A DNA stretch of 64,000 bases from Lytechinus pictus (taxonomy: Eukaryota): positions 30,566,001 to 30,630,000 of the forward strand of contig NC_087259.1 of NCBI RefSeq assembly GCF_037042905.1. The letters are read 5' to 3'. Made by a program: the position numbers and the translations under genes. A model generated the notes under the pieces. It saw nothing but the letters and a program-made list of their open reading frames with translations, did no database searches and was not told the DNA's origin. The first letter of the stretch is position 1, and every line of letters begins with the position of its first letter. Positions 3,793-64,000 of this stretch are shown here, piece after piece.

Positions 3793-4100
3793 AATCAAAT
3801 CTAGGGATTTCCCCTTTTTTGAGACTGCACTGAGCATGCTCAGTGTCATAAAAGAATAAACATCTGCAGCATATACACAATAAACTAAAAATATATTATT
3901 TCAAAATACATGTTTGCTGGTACAGACCCCCCCCCCCCCCCCATCTCCCAAGAATTCTGTTTGCTGGCATTGGTTGTTGTGTATCATTACACACACACAC
4001 ACACACACACACTGTACACACACAAAATAGAACACATCATCAGCTGGCTGCACTTAATCAACAACCATCATCATCATCATCTGTTAAAGTACAGTCCACA

Positions 4101-22385: not shown

Positions 22386-23496
22386 CAGGGAGCTCCCTGG
22401 GTTAGCGTCATTGTAGTTTCGCACCTGTATTAATTAGAAATGTTAGATTTAATCCGTCTAATTTGCATATTAATAAGCCATAAATATTTTGGGCTTATCC
22501 TGAAATAAGTCACCTCTCTTCTTGTGTGTGTCAGTGTATGTGCGCTCGTTGTGTACAAAGTCAATGGGAGAGGAAAGAAGTCACCGCCGCTGACGAAATG
22601 AACGGCAGTGAATGAAGTGATGACTTAAACCAGGATAATGCCAATATTTTTGTCAGGCCAGCCAGCGCTGGGTGGTCTTATTTGCCCCACCGCAATGAGG
22701 CAAATGAGGCCGCCTGACCCTTTTTTTAATGAAATTATGTTGTTGTACTATTCAAAATTAAAATTAGTTCAGTTGGTTTGACTTTGATACAAATACAATC
22801 ACTTTACTAAAACACCCCCATTTGAGGATTAATTTATTAATCCTATCTAATATTATGAAGAAAAAACTTTGGATTGTGTTTTCTACTGTCACAGAACTAG
22901 TAATGTGTTTCTATGAATGTGTTTTATTGGTAGTGGACGCATACTCAAATGTGGTGATGTCTACACTGCATTTAGATGTAACCATAGTCCATAGAATTTT
23001 AATTATGTATTCATCTGGGTGGCCTCATTTGCCCTGTCGGACATCTTTAGTTCACAGGCATCGTGTCAGAAAAAAAAAAGGGAAAGTGGTGAAATTTACT
23101 ACAGTTCTGGCATGCTCAATAATACCTTAAGAAAGTAAACTAAGATAAAAGTTAATACACATTACTGGGTAGTTTACTTGCATCTCAGTCTAAAGTGGCA
23201 ATGCTACTTTCAAAATTTTGATTTTGAGGTGCTGCTGCGTTTTTGCTCCCTCTGGCCATGTGCACTTGGCTGTGAGACATTATCTATGCTCAAACAGTAA
23301 TCCATTTTACCATACCATTCTTGAGCAGTGAGCTAAAAACTAATAGGTGGCCTTATTTACCCCACCCTCCCCTATAGTCTGCCAAGTTGAAACAATTTTT
23401 TATGTATTTTCTCTTTATGTTTTGCAGGTCATGAAGCTATGAAGATAGGTTTGTGAATGAATGAGATGCTGAGTGAATACTGACTCAAGAATCAAG

Positions 23497-25011
23497 ATGG
23501 CTAACTCTTTCTCCATCCTGTTGTCATACATTGACAACCTTCTATGGGGTTGCACACAAATATTCTATGGGATTGTGTTCATCATCAATTTCAACTACCA
23601 GCTTGTGACGAGTCTATATAGATGCATCATTCAACTATGGGCACTGTTAATACAAACTGTGCTGTATACTGCCAAAGCTTTTGTGTTCAGCATTGAGTTC
23701 CTTGCCGAGTTACCGGTCTGGAGTTACCACATGGGAAAGTACCTGATTGATCTAGTCCAGAACCTGATGAGCAATGCAATTCAAGGTTGTATGTCATGGT
23801 CCTGGGAAGCTCTTGTGTACACTGGGGAGTTGCTGGGAAACATCGTTAAGAATCTACTGTTAGCATTCATGAGTGTTTGGACTCAGTTTTTAAATCTAGT
23901 CGTCTTCCAGTTTACCCTGTTTGCTGAACTTTTCACTTCACTGATTGGATCTACCTACAGTCATATGAAAGAAGCTAAAGGAAACACTGTACAGCTCATG
24001 CACAGTGTTGGAAGTGATACCAGAGAATTTGTGCACGGTGTCTGCAGCCTAATCTATGAGTTCTTCATCACTGGAGTAGCCTACCCTATTTCATTTGTAA
24101 ATGCTTGCACCCAAAATATGATTGATGGACTGTATATCTTTATGAGCATGTTGAAGGCTATAGAAGATTTTGTTATTGGAATTTTTGAAGTAGTGATCGA
24201 GTTATTGTATTCAAGCATCAGCATCATTATGAATGTTTTTTATGATATCGTGAACGCTTTCAAAGAAATATCCACATTCTTTATCAATGCGATAGACTAT
24301 GTTGGCCAAGCTTTGATTGACTGTTTTGATAGTGCTGCGGAAGGATACTCGTCACTTAATTTGTTTGTTGGAAAGAATTGGGGCGCCCTCTTGGCTCTAG
24401 CTCTCTGTGTAACCCTGGTGTGGGTTACTATCAATATGAACGGACAACACGAGAGAAATATCCAACACATCATCCAGGATCTCACTCGGCTAGTGAATAA
24501 CTTCACAACTTCTAGATCACGCAATGTCAACAGAGAACCCTTGAGACCTGAAGGTCATCTTCACCAGGATGTCCTTCCTGAAGATCAGCAGCAAGGTGAC
24601 CTTGATGTTCTTAATGAAGGAGAAGAGAATGGAGATGATGGCATGGACCAGGATGTACCAGCAGGTGAAGTAGGAGGTGTAGGAGACCAGCCTGGTCCAA
24701 GCCGATCGACCCACCACACACCATACTCATTTCGATCACGACCATTCACACCGTCAGGTGAGCCCGCTGAAGGAAGTGGCTCGGTTGAATATCTTGTGAG
24801 TAAACTTAAGAACAGATTAAGCGAGGAACAGGAAAGACAAGCATGTGTGGTATGTCTGGATGCAGTAAAGAATACACTCTTCATGCCATGTCGTCACCTG
24901 TGTGTCTGCGTACCCTGTGCAGACAGGATAGTCAGTAATGATGACATATATATGCGGATCTGTCCTCTATGTAGATCTAGGATTGGATCGATTGTTGAGG
25001 TTTATAGTTGA
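23497..25011 (+). CDS. RNF26: Multi-pass membrane C3HC4-type RING E3 ubiquitin ligase, RNF26-like, 504 aa, single main coding exon
   Basis: Long hydrophobic N-terminal half, acidic/disordered linker, and C-terminal RING CVVC..PCRHLCVCVPCA..CPLCR ending IVEVYS; ATG in AAGATGG context; this architecture matches RNF26. Confidence 0.8.
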   Translation: MANSFSILLSYIDNLLWGCTQIFYGIVFIINFNYQLVTSLYRCIIQLWALLIQTVLYTAKAFVFSIEFLAELPVWSYHMGKYLIDLVQNLMSNAIQGCMSWSWEALVYTGELLGNIVKNLLLAFMSVWTQFLNLVVFQFTLFAELFTSLIGSTYSHMKEAKGNTVQLMHSVGSDTREFVHGVCSLIYEFFITGVAYPISFVNACTQNMIDGLYIFMSMLKAIEDFVIGIFEVVIELLYSSISIIMNVFYDIVNAFKEISTFFINAIDYVGQALIDCFDSAAEGYSSLNLFVGKNWGALLALALCVTLVWVTINMNGQHERNIQHIIQDLTRLVNNFTTSRSRNVNREPLRPEGHLHQDVLPEDQQQGDLDVLNEGEENGDDGMDQDVPAGEVGGVGDQPGPSRSTHHTPYSFRSRPFTPSGEPAEGSGSVEYLVSKLKNRLSEEQERQACVVCLDAVKNTLFMPCRHLCVCVPCADRIVSNDDIYMRICPLCRSRIGSIVEVYS

Positions 25012-30229: not shown

Positions 30230-30283
30230 GGATCCGGGCATGAAGATGCGCGCGCACTACCGTGCTTAGAAACCAAAATAAAG

Positions 30284-33200
30284 ATGGGCGGTTCGCAATC
30301 GCGTCTCGATCCTCGGATCCTCGACAGTAGCTCAAATTATTGGCCGGAGTTAGAGCTTGAGAAGCAAATTTCAGTTTTTACTTACGATGAGAATAAACCA
30401 GAAGTGAAGGTATGTATGTTTATACAATATTGCTTAGCTGTCATGGTGTATTTTTTTAGTGTAATTCGTCATGCCTAGCCCTAGCCTTCCCGTCCGCTTC
30501 ATCACTCATTCTCAGTCCCGAATACTCGAGACTGTGTGTGTGGGCCTGTCTTGATCTTGGGTGGTTGGCCTGGGCGCACTCACACTAATACGAGGTTCGT
30601 ATATATAGCCTTATAGTCCTACAGTCTATACGAACCTCGCACACCGGACCGTGTTTGACCGTAGATTTCGAAGTAGTCGGCAAACAGTGCTTCATTGCTG
30701 AAGTAATATTTGCCGAAACTCCTTCTCGCTACGCACCGGGGCTCTTTCCGGTAAGTAGCAATAGTAATACATAACAAAATTATACATACCGGGGGTATGA
30801 TATTTAATTTAACTCATTTCATTTAAAAAGAGCAAATTTCGCTTACCTCGGCCTAGCAAGTGACTTCGTTTGTCTCTTCTACGGAAATACAAGGAAGCCC
30901 GTTGGTGGCGCTAATAAATTTCACAACCTTGATTCAGCTCCTCGGTAATTTTATAACTGTGTCTAAATTCTTTGAATGCGCAATTCTTATGATTAATTTA
31001 CTAATTATGGGCACCAATAAATAAGATACCTTCAAAAACATAATTCAGGATTATTATTGGCGATGATAACACTTTTGTTGCAATTAATTTAAAACGATGA
31101 CTAATATAATTTTTTTTTTTTTAATACACATGCCTGGAACGAAACCAGCAGTACAAGCAGTATTAACGAACGTCACGGTATACCAAAGTCTATACAATGA
31201 AAAGATTGGACACTTCACGGACTTCGCGTAATGCCTTGCGTCGATTTGCGTGTAAAATAGTGTAGGTTTCTAATCTTTCCCTTGTCGTGTCTTTGATATG
31301 AATATAAATCGCGCGCCCTCTTTAGGCGAAAATTGATATCTACGCTGACCAAATTTTATCTCCGTGAAATCTTCACTAAAGATCAAGAAAATATACATAT
31401 TTTTAAGAAAAAACTTCAAGGAGAAGTCACGGAAGGATCTTCTTCTTCTTCCTGTAAAGTACAGACTGCCGTTGGCATATTATCGTACTTGTGCTTGTCA
31501 AGTGCCCAGATGAATAGTGCGAGTAAAAATCTCTACAAAACTATGTGCGGCTAAAAACAGAAGAGGCCTTAACGAAGCCTCCTTTGCTGCACCTCCTGCT
31601 TGAAAGATGCGAGGGAGGTGCTGTGAACTATCTTTGCTGGGAGTGAGTTCCATATTCTGATAGCATCAGGAAAGAATGTCTTTTGATATATTTGTGTTCT
31701 GGCATATGGAATTTGTAACTTATCAGGATTTCCACGTGTACATGGTCCAGTTGATGGAATGAAGTGGTCATCCGGGATGTCAATAAGCTTGTTGATGATG
31801 CAGTAGACCATGCTAGCTCGCTGTTGTGCCCTTCTTTCCTGAAGAGTAGCCCACTGGAGTTGCTTTAGCATATCTGATACACTGCTGGTACGTCGAAAGT
31901 CTCCTAAAGCAAAGCGGGCGTAACGGCGTTGTACCATTTCCAGTTTTGAGATGTTCCTCTGGGTAAATGGGTCCCACACCACAGCAGCATACTCCAGTAC
32001 TGGAAGGACAAATGCTTTGTAGCACAACACTTTCGTCTTGAGAGGACAGTCCCTGATATTTCTCTGCAGGAAGCTGCTGACTGAGTTGGCAGACTTAGTT
32101 GTTTTGTCTACATGGTGATTCCACTTAAGGTTTTCCTGGAAGTTTACACCAAGGTATTTTGCTTTATCAGTCTCCACCAGGGGTATTCCATGAATGCAAT
32201 ATGGTGTCGAACTCTTGATAACTACCCTCTTATTGGTAACATGCATAACTTGGCATTTTTGCGGGTGAAATTGCATGAGCCAGTCATCTTCCCATACTTG
32301 AAGAGCATCCAGGTCCCTCTGAAGCTGTTTAGTGTCCTCCTCTGTCTTGACCTTTCTGTACAAGATGCAATCATCAGCAAAGAGGCGCACCGTAGACTGT
32401 GATGATACATATTCGGGGAGGTCATTAATGAAGAGGATGAAGAGCAGAGGTCCGACCACGCTACCTTGCGGCACTCCTGAGAGAACGGGGGCTTCATGAG
32501 AAGTAACTCCTTCAATAAGAACCCTCTGGGAGCGGTTGCTGAGTAGATGTTCAATCCATGAGTGAATATTGCCTCTGACTCCATAATAGTTGACTTTGTA
32601 CATCAATCTACCATGGGGAACCTTGTCAAAGGCTTTAGACAAGTCCAGTAGAATCACATCATGCTGATCGCCATCATCAATACCCTGGGAAAGGTCCTGA
32701 ACAGCATGTAAGAGCTGAGATGTACAGGAGCGCTTCTTGCGAAAGCCATGCTGGGCGTCACATAAGATGTTATGGCTATCCAAGTGGTCAAGAATGCTAC
32801 TGCAGACAATGTGTTCCAGGGTCTTGCACATAATAGAGGTCAGCGAGATTGGCCTGTAGTTTTCTGCTCTGTTTCTCTCTCCCTTCTTGAAGACAGGAAC
32901 TACATTAGCTCTTTTCCAGTCATCCGGAATAATGCCTTGGTCAACAGATGCTTGAAAGAGAATAGTGAGGATAGGCGTGAGTTCTGTCGCAAGTTCCTTC
33001 AAAAGTCTTCCTTGCAAGCCGTCTGGACCTGTTGCTTTGTGTATCTGCAGTGTTGATAGCAGCTTGTACACTCCATCAGGACTAATGTTGATTTGTTCCA
33101 TGTCTGGATACGGGCTTTGTCCCTTGTCTTTGATGGTGGTCATGTTTTCATCCTTGTTGAAGACAGAAGTAAACTGATCATTCAAGATATGAGCCTTCCT

Positions 33201-36200
33201 CGTGCTGTCTGTAATAGTCCTTCCACTTTGAGCTTTCAGAGGTGCTACTCCAGTGTTATCATTCCTCTTGCTGTTAATAAAGCTCCAAAAGCGCTTGGGA
33301 TTTGAGGACAAGTCTGGATTTATCATGTGATTAATGTAATCACTGTATGCTTGTTTACATGCCACCTGTGAAGACTTTTTAAGTTTTTGATATTTATGGA
33401 AATCTTTCTGCTGCCCGGTACACCGTGCCCGTTTGAAGGCGCGTTTCTTCCTTCTGGAAAGCTGCTTGACTAAAGAATTGATCCATGGCTGATTAAACCG
33501 ACTGGAGGTCATCTTAGATGGTACATGCTTTTGTAGCAAGTCCTGCAAGAAGGTCTTGATTTCCTCCCACATGTTGATGACTGAACTCTTTTCGTCGTGC
33601 ATCTTTATGAAGCGCTGTTGGTACAAGCCACATTCTCTCTTCATTTCACTCAGGTTAGCATTCTTCCATATATGCATTAACCTCTTCACTGGTTTTCGCC
33701 TCTTAGCTGTTACATCTGTGTCAACACCAACAATATCATGGTCTCCGAGCCCTGGTAGTGGAGAGCATTTGTTGACCAGAGATGGTCGGTTAGTCAGAAA
33801 CAAGTCCAAAGTGCTCTGTAAACGTGTGGGAAAAGTCACCATCTGTTGAAGAGTGCAGTCATGAGTCATGTTTAACAATCTGTTGTTCATGCTGGCTGGG
33901 TAGTTATGACCGCTGACGCTGAGGTTCGTCCAATCAATATCTGGAAGATTCAGATCACCACCAATCCACAAAGCTGCTTTCTTGTTTTTGGATGCAACAT
34001 TCTCGACAGTAGAACAAAGATCATTGAGATAATTAATGTCGCTGTTTGGGGGACGATACAAAGCTCCAATTATCAGCTTGACGTTAGCCCCAAATGAGAG
34101 CTTCACAAAGACTTGTTCACCAGTCCCTGTAGTATCTATGATATCGTATATGAGATCATTCCTTATTGCCAGCAGAACTCCGCCTAATCTAAATGATTCG
34201 GTAAGTGTCATAGCAGAATGTGAAATACCAGATTATTGGTGATATTTTATGTGGGCAAAAGCCCACTATCTTTTTGACTTGTCGTGTGTGTCGCGTGCAT
34301 ATGACTGATATTCCTTCGCACGCGAGATGATATGAACCCATGGGTGGCCTGGGCGCGCGTTTCCGTTTTACACCCTGGCGAAGGCATTTTCCGGAAAAAT
34401 AGCCACAAAGCGACTAGTGAAGAGTCTACGTCTACGTTTGTTTACATAATCAGCTGGGTGCGCGATCCAAAAGTCCGCACCGAAGATATCCGCAAAACAT
34501 ACGTGCAAATGCAGCTGAGCTTATAGACCAAAAGATTCAGTCTCTGTATTTTGGTTGTTCCGCTGAACTATATATGTTGGCTGCGCGATTTTTTTTTTAC
34601 TTTATCGTACATGATCATTTATATGAATGAAAACGAAGAAAAGCTAAAATATTGAAAAATAAAACACATAATTACCTTTTTTCATATTATATCTATCCTT
34701 ATATCTATCATATCTGTCTATCCACTATCTATCTTATAAATCAATCTATGGAACTACATGATATATCTATCTGTTAATTTGTCTATCTACTCTGTCTCTC
34801 TCATTCTCTATCTACCTATCTATCTGTCTATCTATCTATCCATCTAACATCTATCTCTCAAATTCTCTATCTATCCATCTGTCTCTCTTTTATTTCTCTC
34901 TATCCATCTATTAATCTACTCATGTGCAATATCAACACTGCCTCGACTTCCTTCGGGAGTCTATTTCCTCAGCTCTACTTTTCCCTTTTTTGTGCTCGAT
35001 TCGATTCAATTACTACTTTATTTACTTGTTACCATTGTTAAATGTCTTGTATTGCATAATGAGTTTTTTTTCTGAAGGTTGCCTCCTATTCTCTTTCAAA
35101 TTCCCCCTCTTGCTTTCCCTTCTCTTTGTCTTATCCCAATTTCTTTCCCTTCTCTCACCTCTTTCTTCTTAATCTTTCATTCCGCTTTTTTCTTCTTTGG
35201 TGACACTTTGTATTACTTTTGGCCCTTTGTATTTATTTATGATACATTTCTTTTTCATCTGTATGAATTTGTATTGTATTTGATATTTATTTATAATGTT
35301 TACTTTATATTTTGTTATGATTCTATTTGTATGTAAACATTCACTTATTTCAGTCTTTGATCTCGAATTCTCTCTATCTATCCATCTGTCTGTCTTTTTC
35401 TCTCTATCCGTCTATATATCTATCTCTCAAATTATATCTATATAGATCTATCTATCTATCTATCTATCTATCTATGTAACTACAGTATCTATCTATCTGT
35501 TAATCTTCTCTGTCCCTCATTCTTTATCTATCTAACATCTATCTATCTCTCTCTCTATCTATCCATCTGTCTTTCTCTGGTTCTCTCTCTATCAATCTAT
35601 CTATCTTCTATCTATCTATATGTAACTGCAGTATCTATCTATCTGTTAATTTGTCGCTCTTCTCTGTCTCTCTCATTCTTTATCTATCTATCTATCTATC
35701 CATCTGTCTTGTTTTCTCTCTTTCTCTATTTCTCTTTTTCCATCCATATATATATCTATCTATCTATAACATCTCTCCCTNNNNNNNNNNNNNNNNNNNN
35801 NNNNNNNNNNNNNNNNNNNNNNNNNNNNNNNNNNNNNNNNNNNNNNNNNNNNNNNNNNNNNNNNNNNNNNNNNNNNNNNNNNNNNNNNNNNNNNNNNNNN
35901 NNNNNNNNNNNNNNNNNNNNNNNNNNNNNNNNNNNNNNNNNNNNNNNNNNNNNNNNNNNNNNNNNNNATCTATCTATCTGTTAATTTGTCTATCTTCTCT
36001 GTCTCTCTCATTCTTTATCTATCTATCTATCTATCTAACATCTACCTATCTCTCAAATTCTCTATCTCTCTCTCCCCCCTCTCTCTATCTATCTATCCAT
36101 CTGTCTGTCTTTCTCTATTTCTCTCTATCTATATATCTATCTATCTATGTAACTACAGTATCTATCTATCTGTTAATTTGCCCATCTTCTCTGTCTCTCT

Positions 36201-39200
36201 CATTCTTTATCTATCTATCTAATATCTATCTCTCAGATTCTCTCTCTCTCTCTCTCTATCTATCCATCTGTCTGTCTTTTTTTTTCTCTCTCTCTATTTC
36301 TCTTTATCCGTCCATATGTACTTCTATCAATCTATCTATCTATCTATCTATAACATCTCTCCATCTCTCAAGTTCTCTCCCCCCCATCTATCTATCTATC
36401 TATCTATCTATCCATCTCTCTGTCTTTCTCTCTCTCTCTCTACTTCTATCTATCTATCTATGTCTCTATCTATTTATCAGTCTTATATCTATCTTTCGGC
36501 ATCTAAGTGTATCAATCCATCAAACTTCAATTTTCTTTCCGATTGTATGTATCTGTTTATTTTTATTTTGTCTGTCATTAATAATAATAATAATAATAGT
36601 GGTATATTTACCCAGGGTAGCCGCTTCAGTTCCGAAGACTGTTCTCCCAGCGGGCCCTGCTATTATTACTCCGGCTTTAGCTGGGCTGCCTAGGCGCTCA
36701 AGCATTCTATTCATTTAGTTAATAATTCATATTAAAAAAAAAACTTTTTCTTAACTTTTCATAAAAAAACCTAACTGCAAAAGCATGTTCGGATTTCACT
36801 CATATGACTGCTCTCTGTACATGAAATGCTCTGATCAGTAACTGTGCAGATTGCATGCGGTGGTGTGGGACTCACCTGTGTCGCACGCTGCAACCAGCGA
36901 CGTGTGTAGACTCTTCACTAGTCGCTTTGTGGCTATTTTTGCGGAAAATGCCTTCGCCAGGGTGTAAAACGGAAACGCGCGGCCTGGGCTTGGCTTGGGC
37001 ACTCATTCATTTCAATGACAATGAACAAGGTTATGGGCTTGGTCCAATCAGAATCCAGGTTCAATCAGTGGCCATGTGAATTTATACAAGTGAAAGAGTA
37101 GACCAAAAGCTTCAGTCTCTGTTATATTGGTTCCACTGAACTCCATTTTATAAATTAATATTATTGGCTCCACTCACCAATTACTAGCCAGGCGGCTTCT
37201 AGAGAGTAAAAATCATTTACTAACGTAAGGTTACTCTCATACGAAGCCATAGACCCACACAGAGCCAGCCAAAACCTGAAACTTTCACCCCCGAGATTTC
37301 TACTTTCCTTCTAAAAGATCTAGCTCTAAATCATGTACATGGGACAAAACTTCATTTCCGACATTTCTACGCTCTCGTTGTTATTTTTAAAACAAGAATT
37401 CATCAAAAAAATGAAAAAAATATTGTACTTCCCCAACGTTACGCGACGCTCGCGTCCGTAATGTTGGGGAAGTACAATAAGAAACAAGATGGCGGCGTAA
37501 ACATCGGGCAAGTCTCTTCCGTCTTTTCACAATATTTGTTCATTTTTTTGATGAATTCTTGTTTTAAAAATAACAACGAGAGCGTAGAAATGTCGGAAAT
37601 TAAGTTTTATCCCATGTACATGATTTAGAGCTAGATCTTTTAGAAGGAAAGTAGAAATCTCGGGGGTGAAAGTTTCAGGTTTTGGCTGGCTCTGTGTGGG
37701 TCTATGAGATAGAAGGCCTGGCTTCGTATGAGAGTAACCTTACGTTAGTAAATGATTTTTACTCTCTAGAAGCCGCCTGGCTACCAATTACAGAGACCGA
37801 AGTTTTAACTCGATCTGTACAGGGACTCAAAAGACAATGGCCATATGTTTATGTATTAAGTTCAGATAAACCAGGTCCAGGGAGTGGGAGTTGCGCGACA
37901 GCCGAAGTAGTAAGTCACTGTTTTTTTGTTTTTTTTCCCCGTTTTGGTGCATTTCAGGCCAAAACAATAATAATCTTGATTTTGGTCCAGTTATTTTAAT
38001 ATATTTTTATGAATTAAAGACAAAAATTGATGAGCCCCGTCGGGGGGATTTTGCATTGTGAACCCCCTAATGGCGGCTGCACGATAGCAAGCTGTCTGTG
38101 TACGAGGAGAAATTTTTAAAAAATGTTTAAAAACTCCTCGAAACAGACGGCTGCCAGGGGCCCGTTTCTCAACACCGTCATAAGTCTAACTTCTTGACTA
38201 AATTCGAGATAGTGAGCTACTTGTCCACTACCGTTTCACGAAGCCCTCTTTACCAAGATCGGGTACAACAACCTCACTAAATATTTATGACACCTCCGAA
38301 CCTGTCATAACTTCTTTCTTAATGACGTACTTGGCATCACGTGGGTAGACTATGACATGCAAAAGTGCCTAGAAATTTTAAAATTATAATCTTACGTAAT
38401 CAATCATAGAGGTTGAAATTACATCACAAAACAAGTGGGTTAATGCATTCAATGATAATCGTAATACAAAGAAACTATAAAAACTTGGTAAAACGCCACA
38501 AACCCATTCATTTTGAAATAGTAAAATGATTTAATTGATAAAGATTCTACCACATCAGGCCATCCATAACTGAACTCGTATTTGTTGTTCTCAGACCCCT
38601 ATTAACAGTTGGATAAATTCTATCTCTAATTTATGCACATAATTTGTCAAATATCGTATATTTCGGTATCAATGATTAAAAATGTTTCGTTAAACTGTAT
38701 TTTGATGACGTTTGGAATCGTAAAAGACCGTATAATTATCATCATTTTACAAAGAAAACCATTGTGGTTTACTTTCGTAAACTATTAAAATTGGATATCC
38801 CGGGGGTACCCATCTCAACGTCCACAAGTGATTTTTTAGTCATGAAATTAATTATTCATAATTTGATTTTCTCTGCAATTGAATGCTCCAGTCTTCATGG
38901 TCTAAGTATGTATGATGCATAATTCACCTGTGCTATTATTTTGAAAAGATTTATTTCCCAATTCATCACAATATTTGCAATATTGTCATAATTTTTCTTT
39001 TTGAAAATTATGCTATTTTGTGACTAAGGCTACGTCTCGTCTGCTCTTTTTACCGATAGTATCGATATCAAGGTATTCTACTTAGGAAGCCTTTCGAGAA
39101 ACATGTTTAGTAAGATTGGAACTAACTCCATGGTTGGTGGATAAAGATATGACTAACTTGTCCATGTGTTGAGAAACGGGCCCCAGCTGTCTAGTGAAAG

Positions 39201-42200
39201 AGATGCCTGGCACTTGCTATACCAAATGCTTCAGTCTCTGTATTTGGTTGTTCCGCTGAACTGCGTTGCCGTTGACTGCACTCACCAATAGTACACAGAC
39301 TGAATTGTTTTTGGCCCGTTTGTATAAGCAGTAGGCCTAACGTTAGATCTAACTTTCGGCAGAAACCCAATTTTCGGATCGATTTTTTGTAAATTGAAAT
39401 GTCTCAAAAAAGAAATTAGGTCTACATCCAACTTGACAAGAAAATATATAAGATTCAGAAATATTGTACCTTAGGCCGCAGTTACTGGTTATTCCTTTCA
39501 AATGGATGCGAGAATTTTTGACAGGAAGGGTTCACCATGTACAAGTAAACAGAGAACTATCTCCATGGTCTCCAGTATCAAGCGGAATACCACAAGGGAG
39601 CGTTCTCGGACCTGTTCTCTTCCTAGTCTTTATCAATGATCTATCATCTGCTGTCAACAAGAGTAATGTTGCTTTATTTGCCGACGATACCAAACTTTAC
39701 AATATAGTGAGTGACTTATCAGAGATCAAAGATCTTCAAGAGGACCTGGATAGACTACAATTATGGTCAGAGAAATGGCAGTTACCGTTCAATAGCAGTA
39801 AATGTAAAGTCCTACACATTGGAAGGAATAATCCAGAAGCAAAATTTTATATGCTGGAACAAGAAGTGAAGTCAGTAGCTGCTGAAAAGGATCTTGGGGT
39901 AACAGTCGATAACCAATTGAAATTTCATCAGCATGTGTCTCTAGCTGTATCAACTGCTGGAATTGTAAAGAGAACTTTCACTCATCTAAACAAATCTACC
40001 TTGCCAATTCTCTTCAAGACGTTAATTAGGCCTCATCTGGAATATGGGAGCGTCATCTAGAACGGTAGATTTACAGAACATGCCAAGAAGGTTGAGAGAG
40101 TACAGAGGCGAGCAACAAAACTAGTGAAGGATTTGAGAGACTTACCATATGAAAGGAGACTCAGGGAACTTAACATGTACTTACTCTATTATAGGAGGAG
40201 AGGAGATATATGATAATGGTCCACCAGATTATGCATGGATTGGTCAACATTTCTCCAGACCATTTCTTCTCCAAGTCTGGTAGTAACTCTACAAGAGGTC
40301 ACTCCATGAAATTATTGAAATCCCATAGCAAACTGGATGTGAGAAATAAGTCTTTCAGTAGAAGAGTAATCAATGACTGGAATAGTCTTCCTGAAAACCT
40401 AATACAAATGCCAACAACAGACAAACTTAAAAGAAATATTGATATATTTTGGCAAAATAAGCACTGAGCTTCCATGACTCCTCACGCAAGCTCATGAAGT
40501 AGTAGTTTTCAGTGATCAATCCTACAAGAAGCGACCAGGAGTTACAGGCTCGCGCCTTTATCCCGTACCAGATGATGATGATCAGAACAAATTCATCCTC
40601 GATCCTTTCTTTGGTCATCGTAAGTTGCCATCTTGGATGACGTCATCGTCCTTACAGACGTCTTTGCTAGTCGCCACATATCGCGATTCGTGCCGCTGCG
40701 TTGTGCTTGTCTATGTGCGTGCGTTAGAACTTGTCGCTCGCATTGATTCTAATAAAAAAGCCTTCACAAAAGCCTTACTCAACGAACGTAGAGGGCAGCA
40801 ACACAAGTCTGCCAGTTTTTCCTCTCCAGCAAAAAAATTTGAAAAATAAGGAATAAATCATCGATTAAGTATATTTTCTGTATTTTTTACTCTAATATGT
40901 AGTATCAAAATAAAGCGTAGAGTTTAAAGAAAAATGTGGGCCATCGTTAAAGATGATATTATGTCATTTAGACCTAAACAAATAAATAAAAATCTAGACA
41001 AAACACTATAGGCCCGAATTGGGCAACATGATTACACATGCAAGCTCGCACTAACACACTACCGTCGATGAATGGGGATGATAGTAAAATTATTGAATAA
41101 ATCCCCAGAAACAACGGTTATTCCTGTCTAGGCTCTTGCTTGCTATTTAGGCCTAGTTAGGATCTACATCGCAAAAACCTTAATGATTAATCTAAATGTT
41201 ATTGTAAAAAGCCGGTATAACATTGTAACAACAATGTGACTTTTTTGTTGTTGACAAAATGATTTAAAAATATGAATTTTCTTTGTGAAATGCTAAGTTA
41301 GACCAAAGGTTTTTCACGGAACCAAAAATGTTTGCCATTACTGCACCATTTTTGCTTTTGTCATGGAAAACAATTGCACAATTGTTTGGCTGATTTGGGT
41401 ATTACTAATATACCAGAAGGATGTATTTTTAAAGCACTTTACAGAGATGCAGGAATGAAAATTGTTGTTTGATTTTAAACCATTGTTTGAGGGAGTATTT
41501 AAAACAAAAATCATCTACTGATCATTTGTTTTATTAAATACATGTAGGTGTTGGTGAGAGGTGACACAGTCTCTGCAGATCAGTTGTTGAAGAAGGTTGC
41601 TAAAGCTCTTGGTAAGTATTAGTAATTCCAATGTGTCTAGGATTATAAAGGAACAAGCCAGCTTGTGTGAAAACAGAAACATTGAATAGGGAATGAGATC
41701 AATGAAAGTTTTGGAATAATTGTACAAACAATAAAGAAGTTGTGAGCATTTGACCTCAAGATCACTAAGTAATGCCGTTGAGATCCTTGTATATCTATTT
41801 ATTTATATTTTCCTTACACAGGGTGGTCTATTCAATATTCAGAACATAAATGTTTTCCGAGAGAGCACTGTATACATACAAAAATCATGATACAGTAATG
41901 AACAGTGAAAGTAATAGAATAGAATTCAGTTGAAAAAAAAATAACATGCTATGTAAAAAAAAGGAAATTAAAAATCAAATGTGTAGTACACATTCATAAA
42001 AATTTAACAATACATTATATTGATAGATATACATTGAGTGATCAAAAAGTGATTACATTTAAACTGAAAGAGATGATAATATGAAAATAAAGACGTATGA
42101 AATAAACTGAGATACAAACAATCAAACAATAGTAGAATATATTTATACAAATAAAATAACAATTAGTTAATTAAAGGGATGCTCCAGGCTGAAGATATTT

Positions 42201-45200
42201 ATATCTAAATACATAGAGTAAAATTCATGGTGCAAAATGCTGTAAATTTCATCAAAATTGGATAACAAATAACAAAGTTTATATTGAATTTTAAAGTTTA
42301 GCAATATTTTATGAAAACAGTTATATGCATTTCGTCATGAATATTCATTAAGTGGGCTGATGATGTCACATCCCCACATTCATTTTTCTTATGTTATTAC
42401 ATTGAAATCATAATTGTTTCATTTTATTCATACATGTGTAAATGATGTGTCTCCATTATAGGTTGCAGCAATAAATAACTAATGCACTTAATCAGTTGAC
42501 AATCCAATTGTTTTAGTTCTTGGTAGAAAAAATATGAATAAACCTAATTTCATATAATAAAATACAAAAGAACAAGTAGGGATATCACACCAGCCCACCT
42601 AATGTTCACCGGAATAATGCAAATCTCTAAAATTCAATTACTTCGTTATTTGTTATCCAAATTTTCAGTATTTTGCTCTGTGAATTTTACTTTATTTATT
42701 GAAATATGAATATCTTCAGTCTGGAGCATCCCTTTAAAGAAGAGACTATATTGCACAAAGCAATTGGCAATGCAACCAAGGTTCATAGTATCACACATGT
42801 GCAACTTTCCCCTTTGGACAGGGGAAATATACCTCAAGATATCTAGTTTTGCTCAGTCTAATGACAGTACAAACTCTTTATCCTTGATATATTTTGTGAA
42901 ACCTACATATCATAAGAGTTGGAAACTTGATCCACAGATAGACTTGATACAAGTAATGTATGTGTACAAAAGTAATCAGTTCAGTTCAATTTCATTTATT
43001 TCCAATTAAAAATCACAATATAAAAATTCATAAAAGTACATAATCGAGTAAATGTAAACCATATTCATGTACATGTATTACAAAAGTCTTCCACATAAAA
43101 TATATATGTATACAATAAGTTAACATTTTAAACAGAGGAAATAGGGAAATTATAAAAACCCCAAAATAGAGTTTGTCAAGATAACCTCCCTTTAAAGAAT
43201 TAGATAAAATATAATTAACAAAATAAGATATAAGAAACTTATTTGCCCACAATAAAACACAAGATCAAACAATAAAGGGGAACAAAACAAAAAAAAAAAA
43301 AAAAAAAACCAAACAAACCCTACACAAAGGTAAAAGGTGGAAAATAAATCTACACAAGTTGAAGATTGATTAGATGCTGCTTTATACTTATTTTAAATGC
43401 ATTATAATTATTTATTGATGCTATATTACTTGGCAGGTCGTTCCAAACTGTTGGTGCTTTATGACTGAATGAAAATAAAAGATAGGATTTTTCGACTGCC
43501 CATAAATGATATTTATTTTTATTCCTTGTATTATAGTTATGTACTGACATATTTAATGAAAGCATATTATTAAGTAAACAAGGTAAAAACCCAATTTTAT
43601 GTTTGAAACATAAAATCAAGATGCAATATCTATTCAACTGATAAATGTCAAGAATTTTGAGTGATCCGAACAGAGGCCTACTATGGGCATAATATGAATT
43701 CAAAGAACATATTCTAACAGCTTTCTTTTGTAATAAGAAAAGGGACTTCAACTTAGATTTGTAAGTGTTTGCCCAAACAGTATTACAGTAAGTCAAAAAT
43801 GGTAAAATAAATGGTTAGTGTCACCATAGCATTAGTGATTTAAAAATACAGATGCTCATAACTTTCCTATTAACATTTTCTTAGGTTACAAGGGATTCAT
43901 TCTAATTTTAGTTGATTGTATGAATGTTCAGACAGAGTGACAATATTGGATCAGGATAGGATGGGGTGTTGGGGGAGGGGGGTTCCAAACCAGATGGAGG
44001 GACTCTGGGGAAGTGTCCAGACTCTTTATTTAATTGATTATGCATTCTACCCCCCCCCCTTTTTTTTTTTTATTAATCTTGCATCTATGAATGTTATCAA
44101 ATTTTAGATATGAAGATGGTTGGTATGAAGAACTTTGGTATTTTTGAAGGACTACACACGCCTATCAAGAAATTCAAATGTTCAGATAAGGTCAAGACAA
44201 GTTCAAAAGGTGAGTTTCCATTGATAATGAGTCATATTGCAGTTTAAAAAGTTCATTAGGGCAATAGACAATTTTGCCCTTATCACATTCAAGAGCACCC
44301 CTTAAATTTCCAAAATAGAATGCTTTTGGGTAACCATCTTCGTTCTCATCTAGAGTTGCCCCAGTTCTCCCACACAATATTCAAGAATATTTAAGAAAAT
44401 CAGTGATGTACATAAGGCAGAAGGACAATGATAACATAATTACATGTTGAGGAAAAATAGGCCTTCAATTAACAGAAATAGCTCAGAAATTCCAACATTC
44501 GCCCCCATGTGAAAAAAGAATTGCCCATAAAAAAATGAACAAAATAAATATTTCCTACCCTATGTCTTATTAATCTAGTTACAGACGACCAGCGTATTCA
44601 TATGCTGGCAATTTACCACAGAGTGTATATTTCTTGTGAGTTTCAAAGAACCTCCATCAATGGCTCTTTAGCTAGTAGGACGAAATGGTGAGGAAAATGA
44701 ACTGATTGTAGATAAAATGAAAGCACATAGCATTTGTTTAATTGATTATTGATAATAAAAGATAAACTGCAATTGGCCAGCTCCCCCTCCATCCCTTGTG
44801 GGGAATGAATAAAGAAAATTGTTGAAATGAAAATGAATGAATGAAAACATGAAATGCTAAATGATTTAATGAATGAATTAATAGTTTTGCATTCATTAAT
44901 AAGTGAATAGATAAATGAATTTATAAATAGATTTATGTGTTAGAAAATAAATCAAAAGATATTAAAATCTTTAAATAACACACAAAATACTTTGAAAGAT
45001 TATATTTTAGTCTAAGATATCGTTCCTGTTATTTTTCATTTTAGACCAAAAGCTATAAAATGAATGACATTTCCTTTTTATGGCTTTGAATTTTATTGAT
45101 GGTATAATTTTATACAGGACTGAGTCTACAAAAATGGTGCTTTGACCTTCGTAAAGAGAAGAAAGAGATAGTGAAAGATCCGGTAGCGTTGTACTTAACA

Positions 45201-48200
45201 TGTCTCCAAGCCAGATCACAGATTATGCAAGGTAAATTTTATTGCTCAATACTTTATGAGATGAAAGGTTATAAGTTGGGCTATTTGGAGGAAAGTTTCT
45301 GATTTGACAATATTGCTACATGTTGATAAATCATCCTAACCATACATAACACCAATTTTACACTTGTAGACCAGTATACTGAATAAGCCAGTTCGTAGTT
45401 CCTTTCTGCGCATGATCAAAAGATTCTACGCATGATCAGAGGAAGGTCATTTGTACTAAGTGTGACATGGTGGTTTAAAATCTAATGAGATAAGCACCAA
45501 CTTTGATGTCTTGATTATTCATATATTCTTTTGAATTGTGGTTTTCATTTACATCCACAAAAAACAACAATGCATCCACGAACACTGGTATTTCACAGTT
45601 TGCCAAGTACCTTGTGCAACATGCTATGATATGCATTCAAAGTAGGAATGCAACAAATACCTTCATAAAGTGTTCACTGGTGTGCTATTCTAGTCACCTG
45701 GTCTATTCAATTTCTTCATCCTGCTATGTAAGGCAAGCTTACGTAATATCTTGCTTTGAAATCTGCCTATCATAATGAAAGAAATGAAAGGTCATTTGAC
45801 CAAAATTGTACATGAAGTAACTACGAACTGGTCTATTATCTTCAGTCTGTATATTGTTCCCATGCATGAAATTATCAGCTTATCCATTCTCTTGTATATT
45901 TTTAAAGTGATAGTAGAGATCAGAATACATACTGTGCATTATTCATATTTCATATTACTTCTCTCACTTATGATTTATGATTCAACAATTCTTCTTTGTG
46001 TCACATTACCAAATATAAATATTGATCAATTATGGTTTTTTTTTTTAAATCAGCATCTCGGTGTAATGTTTGTATTTAGTGCTACGTATTATGGTGATAT
46101 GTTTGTAATGCTTTTTATTCTGTGGCTGTGATCATCAGTAACAAGTGTTCTTGTTTGTCCCTGCAATGTAAAATTCATTTATTTTGGGGGGCGGGGTTCC
46201 GTCTGTCCTTCTGACCATTTTTATTCTCACGAAATTAACTAAAGAACAGTTTAACAGATCAACTTCAAACTTGGTCCACATATGCATATAGGCCTAGCAA
46301 TGATCTGATTAGTGTTTGCTCTAAATAGTTTGTCACACTTTCTGGACCTCAAGCCTTTCTTTAAATATCTTATCTTTAGATAATTTCTACACTATATGGG
46401 GTGTCAAATAAATTATGTTTCTATTTTGTTTTGATATTCCAGGTATCCTTACTCCAACTCCAGAACAGATGGCAAAACTAGAAGGTAAAGATGCTGAAAA
46501 TAATCATCATTTATATTTAATCTCTAGCTAAAAGTAAAATAACATTCTTCTTTTGGAAACAATACATTTTCTATTTTATTGAAAGAAAAGTACAGATGAA
46601 AGAAGGAGAGAGTCAAAGAGAGAGATAGAGAGGGAGAGCATAGGGGAGTGGGGGACTAAACAGAAGAAAACAAAAATAGGGGAAAAACATTCTTGTAAGG
46701 TAATGCCTTGCTGTAATTATGTTTTTTTTAATGTCACATTTTTATAATCAATGAATGAAATGAATGATTTCTGTTGTTCTTATGCATGTGGTGCAGATAC
46801 AGTATGTAATTCCAGGCCGCATCAAACTTCAAGAAATTATGGTTGAAAATAATAGCTTGGAATCTTCTTTTAAAATTTCTTTCCTAGACCACAACGAACC
46901 AGCCTTCTTGGATTCCACATCGTATCTTTCAGTGTGTCATTGTATGGAAGATTATATGACAGCCTATATTAAGCATTGTGAACTCAAAATAGAGCTCTGC
47001 ATTGGGTCTCTAAAGGTATATAGGAATTATTATTTATATAATATTGACTGGCCTTGAGGGGAACATCAAATATATTGCCCCAAAAAGAATCATATTGGCC
47101 AGAGTCTTTAGACGAGGGCAATATGGCTCTTTTAAAGGCAATATTTTTGATTTTCTCTGAAAGAAGAGCCAGTCAATATTCTTATTAATCATCCAAATCA
47201 CATATCTAAAGAAAAATCATGAAAATGGAGATATTTCTTTTAGAATAAAGTTCTATTGTATCAGGTTTATCAGGGTCTATAGGCTCTGCACTCATAATGA
47301 CGTACTTGTGAGCCTCCGGTTCCAGTGTTGTCTTTATTATGACGTATATTGTTGGTGCGCGGATCATTATGAAGCCTATCTCTTTATACACATCCCCAAA
47401 TGCCCGGATGTGAGACTAGGGAAAATATAAAGGTATATTTTGCGTCGTCTCTGCATGCAAAGTTATTACGCCCATAGAGACCAAGCAAAATGCAAATAAT
47501 ATTCCTATCCCTTCCTGATATTCAGAAAATCTAGGTCAATATGGTTTTGTAAGTGACCAGTTCAGATGTCTGATACGAGTAATAATTTACATTATTGACT
47601 TCACATATTGTGCTAACTTGTGAAAGCTTAATGCTGTAATTTAACTTAATAATCTGAGATATTTCAATGGTTCCATCACCCTACTAAGGAAGCCAATGGA
47701 TAATTGGTGAAACATCTCAACAGAGAGTCGTTACTTCCAGGTTTTCGATTAAAGTGTTTTCATATCAAGCTAAATCATGATCAACAAAAACAGATTTTTC
47801 TATTACCTTTTTGTATTTTATATTTTGGGGGGTATATTTTTACTTTATTTATTTTTATTATTATTTGATTTGATTTTTTTTTTTTTGGGGGGGGGAAGGG
47901 TATTTACAAAAACTTAACTAAATCACAATGGCATTTTTTTATTTCCCTGAGTAAATAATTCTTGGAAATTAGCTGGTATTCATTAACTGCATGGATGGTT
48001 GATGAAAGTGAATATTTTATTATGTTCTTGTGAATATTTAATTGTGTTCATGATTTAACAGTTACCAGTGGGAGCTGTGTTTTCAATACGAGCAAACAAG
48101 AGAGGGATGAGGCTCCAAGCTGAACATAAAGAGTACTTTATCTCATGGAGGAAGATGAAGAGGTGAAAGAATAATTTTTTTAAAGCATGGATAGGTTAGG

Positions 48201-50068
48201 TATATTATTATCTGTCTTCTTGGGTTTGTTTATTTATTGTTACTATTTTTCCAAACAGTGTTCAACTACCTCAGAAATTATTAATTAATTGCATGATCTA
48301 CAAAACCAATTTAACTTCCATGAATAGCATTACACATGTGAGAAAAATGTCACAAAATTCAATTCAATTTAATTTTCTCAGTTTAAAGACAAAAATATGA
48401 ATAATACAGACAAGACATAAATCACAGTATTATACTGAAAGGGTAGCAGCCAAAAAGAAATTAATCTTACCTACGGCCGACCTAATGGTAGAGGTGGTGG
48501 TAAGTCCTGGTAAAAAGTATACATTTTTTTTTCTTTCCAAAAGACGTCGACTACACTGTCAGAGCTGCCAATTAGTACTGATTTTCAGTACTTATTATTA
48601 CTGAAAAATGAGAATACTGAAGGTTTCATGCAAAGTACTGATTTCAAAATTATTAGTTTTATGTGCTGTCCTATGTTATTTTCTTTGAAAGTACTGATTT
48701 CCGAACCAAAATACTGATTTTCAGCTTTTGAAATAATGAAATTTTTGGGTTCATGCTCGCAGCTCCGCACTGTTTCCTTTGAAATAAGGTATGTGAATAC
48801 ATATATCTGTTTGATTTAAACTTCACAATCTTTTCGTTTTAATTTTTGAAAAGTTTTTGTTTCTTGTCAAAAGAAATAAATTAATGATCAATTGTGTGAA
48901 ATTCAGACAATTTGATTTAATTCTACACAGGTGGACAAGGGCTGAGGATGACCTATACGTGACCTATGACCTTTACTCCTGCACCCATGATACTTACAGC
49001 ACCTTGTCGATAGAGACACCCCAAGCACCTTACCTGGTTGCTGTTACCATAGAGATGATCAAAACATTGCAGGTTTGAAATAAAAAAGGCTTCACTTTGG
49101 TTCTCTTAAAACTTTTATTATAAAATAGTTTTTAGTTCTATGTAGAAATTAAAGTGGTTATGTGGTCTAGATTTATCATTTAGTGTTTGATCAACCTATA
49201 AAATAAGTTATAAGATCTTAGTTATTTTCATTACCGTATACAAACTTTAACTTTTCATGTTTGATTTGCGTAGACCTTTTTACCTATTAGTACCAAACTT
49301 ATATAGATATTGTTCCATCTTTATTTTTGAACTGTTGCTGATATTCCTGGCATACAAGACATGGTTTTCAATTATCACAGACTCATTTAATGCCGTTGAA
49401 ACATGGAAATTATAAATATAAAAAACATCAGGGTTAGTGAAAGTCATTTGTTTTGCCTATGGATTTGGTTTGCTTTGCCTATTTTGTTTTCATGTATGTT
49501 ATAAACTTTATAATGTATTGAAACTCAATAAGTTAACTATATTATACTTTGTCATAACATTAAAATCTTACAAAAAAGATGTATGATGGTTATCTATTCA
49601 TTGATTCTTAATGAAATTTTTTTATATGTTAAGTCAGATTTTGCAATCTCTCTCCTTATATCTTTGATAAGGCTCCTTAAACATGGATTATATAGATTGC
49701 GTTTAATATGCAAATATGCAAGGTTGGAATTTTTCTCTATGCTTTAAAGCCCTTTATAATTATAAAAAAGAAATCCATATATGTTTCTGATGTAATCTTT
49801 CATTTTATGTGATAATTAATTCAAATTAAAGTAACAAATATCTTTCTTAGATTTCTCCAACAGTTTTATTCAGCTTTATTCATAGTTATTATTCTTCCAT
49901 TTCCTTGACCAGGGGGAGATGGATGGAGTAATTTTTCAGACGTCTGACCTGAAGATGGACGAGAATGGAGAGGTGGTGGAGTGGAATAATATAACCTTTG
50001 ACCCTGGGCAATTCAAGGCAGAGACTGAAGCAGGAAATAAGTACATTGACCTTTCAACTTTGACATGA
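30284..50068 (+). CDS. N-myristoylated FERM-like protein related to SNX17/SNX27/SNX31 but lacking PX (and PDZ) domains, 324 aa
   Basis: Exons 30284-30409, 41548-41611, 44108-44209, 45118-45231, 46443-46484, 46888-47015, 48062-48162, 48931-49072 and 49913-50068; all GT-AG with compatible phases, 975 nt in total. Translation: MGGSQS...KQISVFTYDENKPEVKVLVRGDTVSADQLLKKVAKALDM..NFGIFE..LSLQKWCFD..DPVALYLTCLQARSQIMQG..YLSVCHCMEDY..IKHC..ISWRKMKRW..LSIETPQAPYLVAVTIEMIKTLQ, following the F1-F2-F3 pattern of SNX-FERM proteins. Confidence 0.82.
31438..34185 (-). mobile_element. 5'-truncated LINE (partial APE endonuclease plus RT; RTE-X/CR1-type, clade uncertain) with (GAA)n tail
   Basis: Uninterrupted ORF 31569-34211 with YRPP, GDLNLP and DHD endonuclease motifs, NYRPISLT, DLSKAFD, GVPQGS and LFADD; 3'UTR ends in GAAGAAGAAGAAG on the minus strand. 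Confidence 0.95.
34690..36495. repeat. Degenerate (CTAT)n/(CT)n simple-repeat region containing an assembly gap (N, 35781-35967)
   Basis: Seen directly in the sequence. Confidence 0.9.
37185..37783. mobile_element. Foldback MITE with ~240-bp TIRs and 8-bp TSD (hAT-like)
   Basis: TAGCCAGGCGGCTTCTAGAGAG ... CTCTCTAGAAGCCGCCTGGCTA; CCAATTAC at 37177-37184 and 37784-37791; inner hairpin 37422-37478. Confidence 0.88.
38158..39183. mobile_element. Non-autonomous Harbinger element
   Basis: TIRs GGGCCCGTTTCTCAACAC; CAG TSD at 38155-38157 and 39184-39186; the paralogous empty site reads GGCTGACAGCTGTCTAG near 21150-21166. Confidence 0.9.
39490..40583 (+). mobile_element. CR1 LINE 3' fragment, decayed
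   Basis: GIPQGSVLGP, LFADDTK, RPHLEYG then a premature TAG, TRGHSMKL and VINDWNSLP; (GAT)n tail near 40571. Confidence 0.9.
42175..42733. mobile_element. Kolobok-like (TTAA) MITE
   Basis: TTAA|AGGGATGCTCCAGGCTGAAGATAT ... ATATCTTCAGTCTGGAGCATCCCT|TTAA. Confidence 0.85.
42985..43810 (-). mobile_element. L2/Crack-type LINE 3' fragment
   Basis: TYCNTVWANT..LFLLQKKAVRI..HSRPLF..HNYNTR..WNDLP; minus-strand AATAAATGAAATTGAACTGAA tail near 42985. Boundaries approximate. Confidence 0.8.
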
Positions 50069-51071
50069 GGTCATGAGCAACATAACCTTTGACCCTGGAG
50101 AGGTGAAGCCAGAGACTGAGGCATTAAACAGGTGCATTGACCTTGACATGAGGTTGTTCTGCTGTATTTATTGACTATATGATATGGAGACAAAGGATTG
50201 AGAAAGGGAATCTTTTACATGATGTTATTTGTCTCGTGTCTGTAAATTTGAAGATGGAGGTAGACAGTTTGTTGAGTTTTGAATTGAAAATGTTCATAGA
50301 CTTCCTGTGAACATGGGCTGTCCTCAATAGGCCTGAGGCAAGCAAAAAGTTGATATTTTGACCTTTTCAACTTTGATAGTAAGGCACTATAGGATCCTTT
50401 TACCAATTGTGTCTGAATTCTTAAGTCAAAGCAGTATAAAATTTGACTAAAATTCTTTCAACTCTCACTGGAGTGCATTTCATAATAATTGCATGTTCAT
50501 CCATGCACGATATATACACCACAAAGCCTTACTTTATGTTAATCCACATGGCTTTCAAAATTAAATTGCATGTTAAATATCGGAAAGTGTCTTTCAAATA
50601 CTTGATGAATTATATCTTGATATATTTTTATATTTCATCCAAAACCATTTCTAATGAATGAAGCTACCAACTATTTTTTTTTTTAATTCTGAATGATGAA
50701 ATGTTATAGACTTAGTCTTATTTTAGCATGAAAGAGGACTGATTTAATACCAAATTTAAAATAAAGTATGAATTCTATTTTCAGATAAAATAGTTGAAAT
50801 ACATTACTGTTTGTAGAAAACCCAGGAGTTCTATTTTACTTCAATGATCTACTTTTTATTCTATGGTGTCACAATTTACGGGTTTTTTAAATCTCTCTTT
50901 TAATTGTCATAAATAATCATGTTTTATAGTTGGTTGAATAGTTTTTATATTATTTTTCAAATCCATGCATTCATGTGTGCATTTTTTATTTCATTTACCA
51001 CTTTCACACATTCAGGTGATCTGAATATTCAGAGACTGCAAACTTATTATCCATAGTTTATTGCAATTCAG

Positions 51072-61054: not shown

Positions 61055-61360
61055 CTATGAAATTATGAAATTATTTAGGTGCATGATTTAATGTTAGGTA
61101 GATCTAGTTCTGGTTTACTACTGCTGAGTGATATTTCCTTTTCAGTAAGGAATGTCCATTTAAAATATCACTGTCAATGCAGTCCTCATGTACTTAAATT
61201 TCAGGGATTTACCTGCATATTTCTTTTTATAACATACTGTTTCTCATTCATACAGGATTTCTCGGATAAACTGGGAGGCTTTTGACACCTTGGTAATCTT
61301 TCCCTGGTAAATTTTTGTGTTGATTTGAACTGAAAAATAAAACGAAAAAAGTATAGGACA

Positions 61361-63773: not shown

Positions 63774-64000
63774 GTAAGTGCTTCCCCCTATTATTATTAT
63801 TATTATGATAATTATTATTATTATTAATAATAATATCATTATTATCATTATTATTTTTATTATTATTTTTATTATTATCATTATTATTATTATTATTATT
63901 ATTGGTATCATTATTATCATCTTTATTATTGTTTTTGTAGTAGTAGTAGTAGTAGTAGTTTGATATCACCTTTGCCTTGGAGGTGAAAAAGGAACTTTGA

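Follow-up and report, generated by a model that had tools for sequence, protein, structure and literature searches.

A stand-alone SNX17/27-type FERM protein in the sea urchin Lytechinus pictus, with orthologues from scallop to echinoderms and a candidate myristoylation signal in sea urchins and sea cucumbers

A stretch of 64,000 nucleotides of the sea urchin Lytechinus pictus (NCBI RefSeq assembly GCF_037042905.1, contig NC_087259.1, positions 30,566,001 to 30,630,000 of the forward strand; hereafter the window) contains a gene that codes for a FERM domain of the SNX17/27 type and for no PX domain. To our knowledge SNX17, SNX27 and SNX31 are the sole carriers of this atypical FERM, always together with a PX domain and on endosomes that carry phosphatidylinositol 3-phosphate (PI3P). 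We show here that the locus is a functional single-copy gene under purifying selection and that its product is truly devoid of a PX and also of a PDZ domain. The protein begins with a candidate N-myristoylation signal and ends in a conserved tail of its own, and the explanation that we favour for the locus as a whole, with somewhat better than even confidence, is that it encodes a membrane-peripheral FERM adaptor, myristoylated in echinozoans and gated by its tail.

Splice sites and open reading frames (ORFs) were scanned with the help of homologue sequences, which gave a FERM-only gene model of nine exons on the forward strand (30284-50068) with GT donors and AG acceptors throughout. The spliced ORF has 975 nt (324 codons plus TGA) and its N-terminus is MGGSQS. 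An earlier interpretation made from the letters of the window without database searches (the sequence-only reading) had proposed the same number of exons, length and N-terminus, and the rebuilt model matches it exactly. The exons are the following (F1, F2 and F3 are the three lobes of the FERM domain):

30284..30409 (+), exon 1: start context AAAG-ATG-G; opens MGGSQSRLDPR... and codes for the linker and the first F1 beta-strand; donor AAG/gtatgt after codon 42, joined to exon 2 in the NCBI model
41548..41611 (+), exon 2, 64 nt: F1 lobe (VLVRGDTVSADQLLKKVAKAL); found in NCBI models
44108..44209 (+), exon 3, 102 nt: rest of the ubiquitin/RA-like F1 lobe
45118..45231 (+), exon 4, 114 nt: end of F1 and start of the helical F2 (QKWCFD...ALYLTCLQARSQIMQG)
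46443..46484 (+), exon 5, 42 nt: F2
46888..47015 (+), exon 6, 128 nt: end of F2 and first F3 strands
48062..48162 (+), exon 7, 101 nt: F3 strands with W221 and, across the exon 7/8 junction, the invariant W227
48931..49072 (+), exon 8, 142 nt: F3 beta5-7 and C-terminal helix (TPQAPYLVAVTIEMIKTLQ), with the invariant I269
49913..50068 (+), exon 9, 156 nt including TGA: conserved C-terminal tail

Two other candidates of the splice scan for F3 exons (48410-48509 and 48725-48788) are spurious, the homologues placing the exon at 48062-48162. Within exon 9 the order is F281-Q-T-S, a beta-hairpin, W297-N-N299-I-T-F302, a short helix and Y-I-D-L-S.

When the peptide of exon 8 (47 aa) was compared with 1.8 billion representative proteins, it matched one 284-aa protein with 100% identity, and relatives with 53-55%. 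The cluster entries of L. pictus are labelled 'uncharacterized protein' and belong to LOC129277583 (XP_054769715.1 and XP_063966386.1) and LOC129278087 (XP_054770276.1), and that of L. variegatus to LOC121429168 (XP_041482038.1). The gene had been taken for a hidden one; NCBI does annotate the locus, though each L. pictus model is incomplete. Every splice junction is present in some NCBI model and no single L. pictus model has all nine exons, the nine-exon product being identical to XP_054770276.1 over exons 1-8 and to XP_054769715.1 over exons 2-9. The first of these models reads through the weak donor of exon 8 (CAG/gtttga) and ends in ..TLQV at the next stop. The second begins with 'MP' and continues straight into exon 2 (MP-VLVRGD); the pattern ATGCCNGT, sought upstream of exon 2 in the window for a first exon that would explain this start, was not found.

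All nine exons recur at the L. variegatus locus, with AG/GT boundaries at the same places. Introns and flanks of the two species are ~82-91% identical, which blurs the contrast between exon and intron, and the synonymous/non-synonymous ratio was used instead. Over the 975 nt of coding sequence there are 19 substitutions, 18 of them synonymous and one non-synonymous, which chance would not produce, and the nine-exon product differs from residues 12-335 of XP_041482038.1 by one residue (I184K). Furthermore, spliced full-length ORFs were found on Logan contigs of 1.0-1.8 kb from a Holothuria-like and an ophiuroid-like sample, and therefore the orthologues are transcribed. A real gene, conserved across species, is thus what the earlier interpretation had picked out, and the 18:1 ratio excludes a pseudogene.

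Both the profile and the fold assign the FERM domain to the SNX17/27 type, as the sequence-only reading had proposed. Single exons compared with Pfam gave nothing except a weak FERM_M match, for which exon 4 is the source, and one exon compared with the PDB gave nothing. Below threshold, Pfam matches of the 13 family members (described below) were to FERM_M in 10, to SNX17-27-31_F1_FERM in 6, to SNX17-31_F2_FERM in 3 and to RA_2 in 2. A profile of the 13 sequences, compared with all PDB sequences, found the SNX27 FERM with an expectation value (E) of 7e-16 over F1, F2 and most of F3 (profile positions 21-245 of 306) and the SNX17 FERM with 4e-10, while every other FERM had E > 0.3 (talin, KRIT1 and FARP2 at least 0.38). 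AlphaFold2 models were built with 9 and with 13 sequences. They reached a mean predicted local distance difference test (pLDDT) of 84 and 86 and a predicted template modelling score (pTM) of 0.82 and 0.84, and with the deeper alignment the five models agree. In Foldseek searches with the two models the six best matches were all FERM domains of SNX17 or SNX27: those of SNX17 (4TKN, 4GXB) with E 5e-14 to 3e-12 and template modelling (TM) scores of 0.77-0.79, those of SNX27 (8TTT, 7CT1) with E ~2e-10 and TM 0.76-0.77. Radixin, merlin and 4.1 proteins came next (~1e-7), and in total more than 160 FERM-domain matches had E <= 1e-3, with the three-lobed F1-F2-F3 architecture recovered. SNX27 is therefore the best relative in sequence and shares the compact three-lobed atypical FERM fold, with an RA/ubiquitin-like F1, a small helical F2 and a PTB-like F3, and SNX17 is the best structural match. 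One result counts against this assignment: the profile of F3 plus tail alone was not significant against the PDB (SNX27 E 0.09, KRIT1 0.3), and so the homology of F3 rests on the full-length profile together with the fold.

Only 25 residues precede F1, the first F1 beta-strand beginning at residue 26 in both AlphaFold models, which agrees with the start at about 25 residues after Met that had been read from the sequence. No family member has a Pfam match to a PX or PDZ domain. The opposite explanation would be an artefact of annotation, in which the gene is the 3' fragment of a normal PX-FERM sorting nexin, its PX exons being located upstream or in an assembly gap, or else a decaying pseudogene. 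The L. pictus frame is indeed open for 324 nt upstream of the ATG (to 29960), there is a gap within the locus, and one NCBI model of L. pictus has the different start already described. The features needed to judge this are:

23473-25008 (+), single-exon RING-finger gene, 512 aa, C3HC4 at the C-terminus (Pfam zf-C3HC4_3, 1.4e-12)
35781..35967, assembly gap (run of N) in intron 1, within a degenerate (TCTA)n microsatellite
30576..36981, intron-1 block of 6.4 kb without counterpart in the intron of L. variegatus, whose flanking sequence is contiguous

In other species the frame is closed just before the conserved ATG, by in-frame stops at 9-69 nt in L. variegatus, Diadema, Apostichopus, two Holothuria transcripts, the ophiuroid-like transcript and Patiria. 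Between L. pictus and L. variegatus, indels of 17, 1 and 5 bp fall in the last 150 bp upstream of the ATG and break the frame, whereas exon 1 has none. The RING-finger gene lies on the same strand and ends 5.3 kb before the FERM gene, a synteny shared with L. variegatus (where the RING protein has 504 aa); in Patiria a divergently transcribed acyltransferase gene, on the other strand, ends 300 bp upstream of the coding sequence. The ORF pieces between the RING-finger gene and exon 1 had no Pfam PX match. The gap lies in intron 1 (11.1 kb), 5.4 kb past the donor of exon 1 and 5.6 kb before the acceptor of exon 2, with the same degenerate TCTA/ATCT microsatellite on both sides (35369-35767 and 35968-36494), and it belongs to the species-specific insertion at 30576-36981. 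Because the junction of exons 1 and 2 (..PEVK/VLVRGD..) is contiguous in all orthologues, no coding exon lies inside the gap and it is irrelevant to the frame. The stops in orthologues, the upstream indels, the neighbouring genes and the lack of PX matches upstream together establish the PX-less state, and the artefact explanation is essentially refuted.

Profile searches recovered orthologues of 284-335 aa in the echinoderms Diadema, Strongylocentrotus (partial), Apostichopus, Holothuria, Amphiura, Patiria and Acanthaster, and in the hemichordates Glandiceps and Ptychodera, three Branchiostoma species and the scallop Pecten. At NCBI they appear as 'uncharacterized', 'FERM domain-containing' or 'sorting nexin-27-like'. 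The maximum-likelihood tree follows the species tree (Pecten, on a very long branch, then amphioxus, hemichordates, and Echinozoa plus Asterozoa), and to judge from it the members are single-copy orthologues. Among the matches listed by these word-seeded searches there was none from vertebrates, arthropods or nematodes. The gene had been thought specific to one lineage. With FERM-only orthologues in all echinoderm classes sampled, in hemichordates, amphioxus and a scallop, the family is older and broader than that, and it is a new architectural variant of a known FERM module. In the literature we found no mention of six LOC identifiers of the family loci and no description of PX-less SNX-FERM proteins.

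Two side observations were made in these searches. Isoform X1 of Glandiceps talaboti carries an insert of 13 residues (VYTGKCADSHSSS) at precisely the site where urchin exons 7 and 8 meet, suggesting an alternative splice site inside F3 beside the invariant Trp. In addition, the 47-aa peptide of exon 8 matches eight separate stretches of a 2204-aa protein of Calliphora vicina (XP_065358918.1) with 37% identity and E 4e-09, which could be a repeated F3-like or a low-complexity unit.

The N-terminus is a probable N-myristoylation signal, kept in sea urchins and sea cucumbers only. The consensus MGxxxS noticed in the sequence-only reading is present in L. pictus (MGGSQS), Diadema (MGAFQS), Apostichopus (MGLRES) and Holothuria (MGMTES), that is, in two echinoderm classes. 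The pattern G-{EDRKHPFYW}-x(2)-[STAGCN]-{P} (of the PROSITE PS00008 type) fits these four of the 13 members, all of which share the strong start context AAG-ATG-G. The linkers that follow are too different in urchins and sea cucumbers to be aligned, yet both groups retain Gly2 and Ser6. Mapped on the gene tree, MGxxxS was gained once, on the branch that leads to Echinozoa. As the PX-less state is family-wide and MGxxxS is confined to these two groups, the motif is a later addition to a protein that was already without PX, and the proposal that a lipid anchor had replaced PI3P binding is not supported.

Several facts weigh against myristoylation. Most members of the family exist without the MG start: the conserved MG..S sought across the family fails in nine of the 13 (ophiuroid and ophiuroid-like, asteroids, hemichordates, amphioxus and scallop), which lack Gly2 and have ME../MD.. 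right before F1. The open frame of L. pictus holds in-frame ATGs upstream at 29969, 30089 and 30143, and the L. variegatus protein of NCBI starts 11 codons earlier (MRAHHLETKVK-MGGSQS); initiation at any such ATG would abolish myristoylation. The source of the earlier L. variegatus start is a small upstream ORF (uORF):

30240..30269 (+), uORF of nine codons (MKMRAHYRA, then stop), out of frame, its end 14 nt short of the main ATG

The L. variegatus sequence differs here by 5 bp, which brings the second ATG of this uORF in frame with the main ORF, and so the NCBI protein gains its 11 residues.

Both the absence of Gly2 in those nine members, from which it follows that the core function needs no lipid anchor, and these upstream ATGs with the uORF would suit a soluble cytosolic FERM scaffold or small-GTPase effector, in which MGxxxS is unused or unimportant and any membrane contact is made by the FERM domain only. 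The weak matches of F1 to RA_2 and to the F1 domains of the sorting nexins point the same way, since the F1 lobes of SNX27 and SNX17 bind Ras (reviewed in PMC8083963). Against it, Gly2 and Ser6 have been kept in four species of two classes despite the diverged linker, the conserved ATG has the strongest start context, and the upstream ATGs do not keep their frame from one Lytechinus species to the other, while in Diadema, Apostichopus and Holothuria stops cut them off. We regard the cytosolic scaffold as a possible but doubtful alternative to a myristoylated adaptor.

Residues 1-21 are disordered in both AlphaFold models (pLDDT below 50). Myristoyl-anchored peripheral proteins need a second membrane signal, myristate alone giving a weak membrane affinity. 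The urchin protein resembles such two-signal proteins in its Met-Gly, the small uncharged residue 3, Ser6, the lack of Pro7 and the flexible segment, and differs from them in that it has neither a nearby Cys for palmitoylation nor a basic cluster, residues 1-25 holding no Cys, two basic and four acidic residues (net acidic). Therefore the second membrane signal would have to be the FERM domain.

What the FERM domain may bind can be judged from the known surfaces of its relatives. SNX27 binds acidic-DLF motifs of SNX1/2 and FAM21 through R437, R438, K439, K495, K496, R498 and K501 (PMC9038204). In the urchin protein the alignment places E185, L186, C187, H245, D246, Y248 and S252 at these positions, and the basic surface for ESCPE-1 and FAM21 is thus gone. 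Together with the absence of PDZ and PX, the conserved extra tail and the echinozoan myristoylation signal, this sets the protein apart from SNX27. Cargo with NPxY/NxxY motifs is bound by these sorting nexins in the groove of F3. Cargo binding by SNX17 requires W321 and V380 (PMC11772769). In F3 the urchin W221 and W227 align with W471 and W477 of SNX27; W227 is invariant in the family, as is I269 on the C-terminal helix. W227 and I269 are candidate equivalents of SNX17 W321 and V380.

Behind the FERM domain a tail of ~45 residues is strongly conserved in the family, with F281-x-T-S, a predicted beta-hairpin and W297-x-N299-x-x-F302. N299 is invariant, W297 and F302 are found in 12 of 13 sequences, and the amphioxus proteins stop two residues after W-x-N-x-x-F. 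By its pattern this motif belongs to the NxxY/F class of ligands that these FERM domains bind. Since the per-residue confidence of AlphaFold is high at 291-300 (pLDDT 87), the model suggests that the tail packs against the FERM domain, with a putative docking in the F3 groove. A precedent exists in SNX17, where the C-terminal NxxF (N459, F462) occupies the cargo pocket of its own protein (W321, V380) and autoinhibits the binding of Retriever (PMC11772769). Both proteins therefore have an N-x-x-F C-terminal to the FERM domain, but in SNX17 it sits after a disordered region of ~70 residues, whereas the urchin tail follows the FERM domain by ~8 residues and is predicted to form a beta-hairpin. 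The urchin protein also differs in having no PX and no ..EDL-COOH, which SNX17 uses for Retriever, its extreme C-terminus being variable in the family and without a terminal Leu (..LSTLT in Lytechinus).

A protein of this kind might act as a dominant-negative competitor, as had been suggested from the sequence, holding NPxY/NxxY tails back from SNX17-Retriever or SNX27-Retromer. The candidate pocket residues W227 and I269 are kept and every known coupling element (PX, PDZ and the SNX27 basic surface) is absent, as a decoy would have it. A pure decoy, on the other hand, is not expected to stay single-copy with a species-like gene tree from molluscs to echinoderms, nor to evolve its own conserved tail. 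The loss of the SNX27 partner surface and the conserved tail argue for a function of its own over simple competition, and we consider the competitor quite improbable.

In the adaptor that we favour, Gly2 would be myristoylated co-translationally in echinozoans and give a weak and reversible membrane affinity. We infer that a second membrane contact would come from the FERM domain, with the F3 groove on N-x-x-Y/F tails of membrane proteins, and F1 could possibly bind a Ras-family GTPase. In the ligand-free state the W-x-N-x-x-F of the protein itself would fill the F3 groove as a pseudo-ligand, like the C-terminal NxxF of SNX17. Because PX, PDZ, the SNX27 basic surface for acidic-DLF motifs and the SNX17-type terminal Leu are all absent, cargo would not be coupled by any of the established routes to PI3P endosomes, Retromer, ESCPE-1/WASH or Retriever. 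A more specific version, which we put forward as speculative and rather unlikely in all its parts, is that the family is an autoinhibited FERM adaptor that sorts or retains NxxY/F membrane proteins without PI3P, Retromer, ESCPE-1 or Retriever, that the myristoyl anchor of echinozoans relocates it to the plasma membrane or Golgi instead of PI3P endosomes, and that cargo displaces the pseudo-ligand and so makes the tail available to an effector.

Other features of the window lie in intron 1 and around the gene:

31572-34232 (-), non-LTR (long terminal repeat) retrotransposon ORF, 887 aa, no internal stop, with Exo_endo_phos_2 (endonuclease) and RVT_1 (reverse transcriptase)
39452-40057 (+), and perhaps 40195-40464, second, degraded reverse-transcriptase fragment in intron 1 (RVT_1 2.4e-14)
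50079-50144, tandem copy of the last ~66 nt of the coding sequence (49988-50053)
61334-63805 (+), first exons of a mitochondrial-type FAD-dependent (flavin adenine dinucleotide) oxidoreductase (Pfam DAO, 7.5e-13)
3852-4520 (+), 14174-14713 (-) and 16322-16675 (-), Myb/SANT-like DNA-binding ORF (Myb_DNA-bind_5, 2e-06) and PIF/Harbinger transposase-like fragments recognized by eye

The block at 30576-36981 contains the first of these, an antisense long interspersed nuclear element (LINE), together with microsatellite arrays and the gap. As the LINE lies within a block absent from L. variegatus, it may be a recent and possibly still active insertion. The tandem copy (80% identity, including the NITFDPG codons) lies just past the stop codon, out of frame with the coding sequence and with no obvious acceptor; it is also present in L. 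variegatus and is probably an old duplication in the 3' untranslated region. The N-terminal part of the upstream RING protein is hydrophobic and looks multi-helix, and we take the gene to be RNF26-like in look. The downstream oxidoreductase, on the same strand as the FERM gene, presumably resembles sarcosine or dimethylglycine dehydrogenase. The ORFs at 3852-4520, 14174-14713 and 16322-16675 are probably transposon remnants; the last had no Pfam match.

The existence of a conserved stand-alone FERM protein from a mollusc to amphioxus and echinoderms means that this module need not be part of a sorting nexin to work. Within the family there is also a natural experiment, with the same FERM domain carrying a myristoylation signal in sea urchins and sea cucumbers and lacking it in starfish, brittle stars, hemichordates and amphioxus. 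Furthermore, the conserved W-x-N-x-x-F suggests that autoinhibition by a pseudo-ligand, reported in 2024 for SNX17, may be an old trait in this line of FERM domains. Genetic tools can be applied to L. pictus, and these predictions are directly testable in it.

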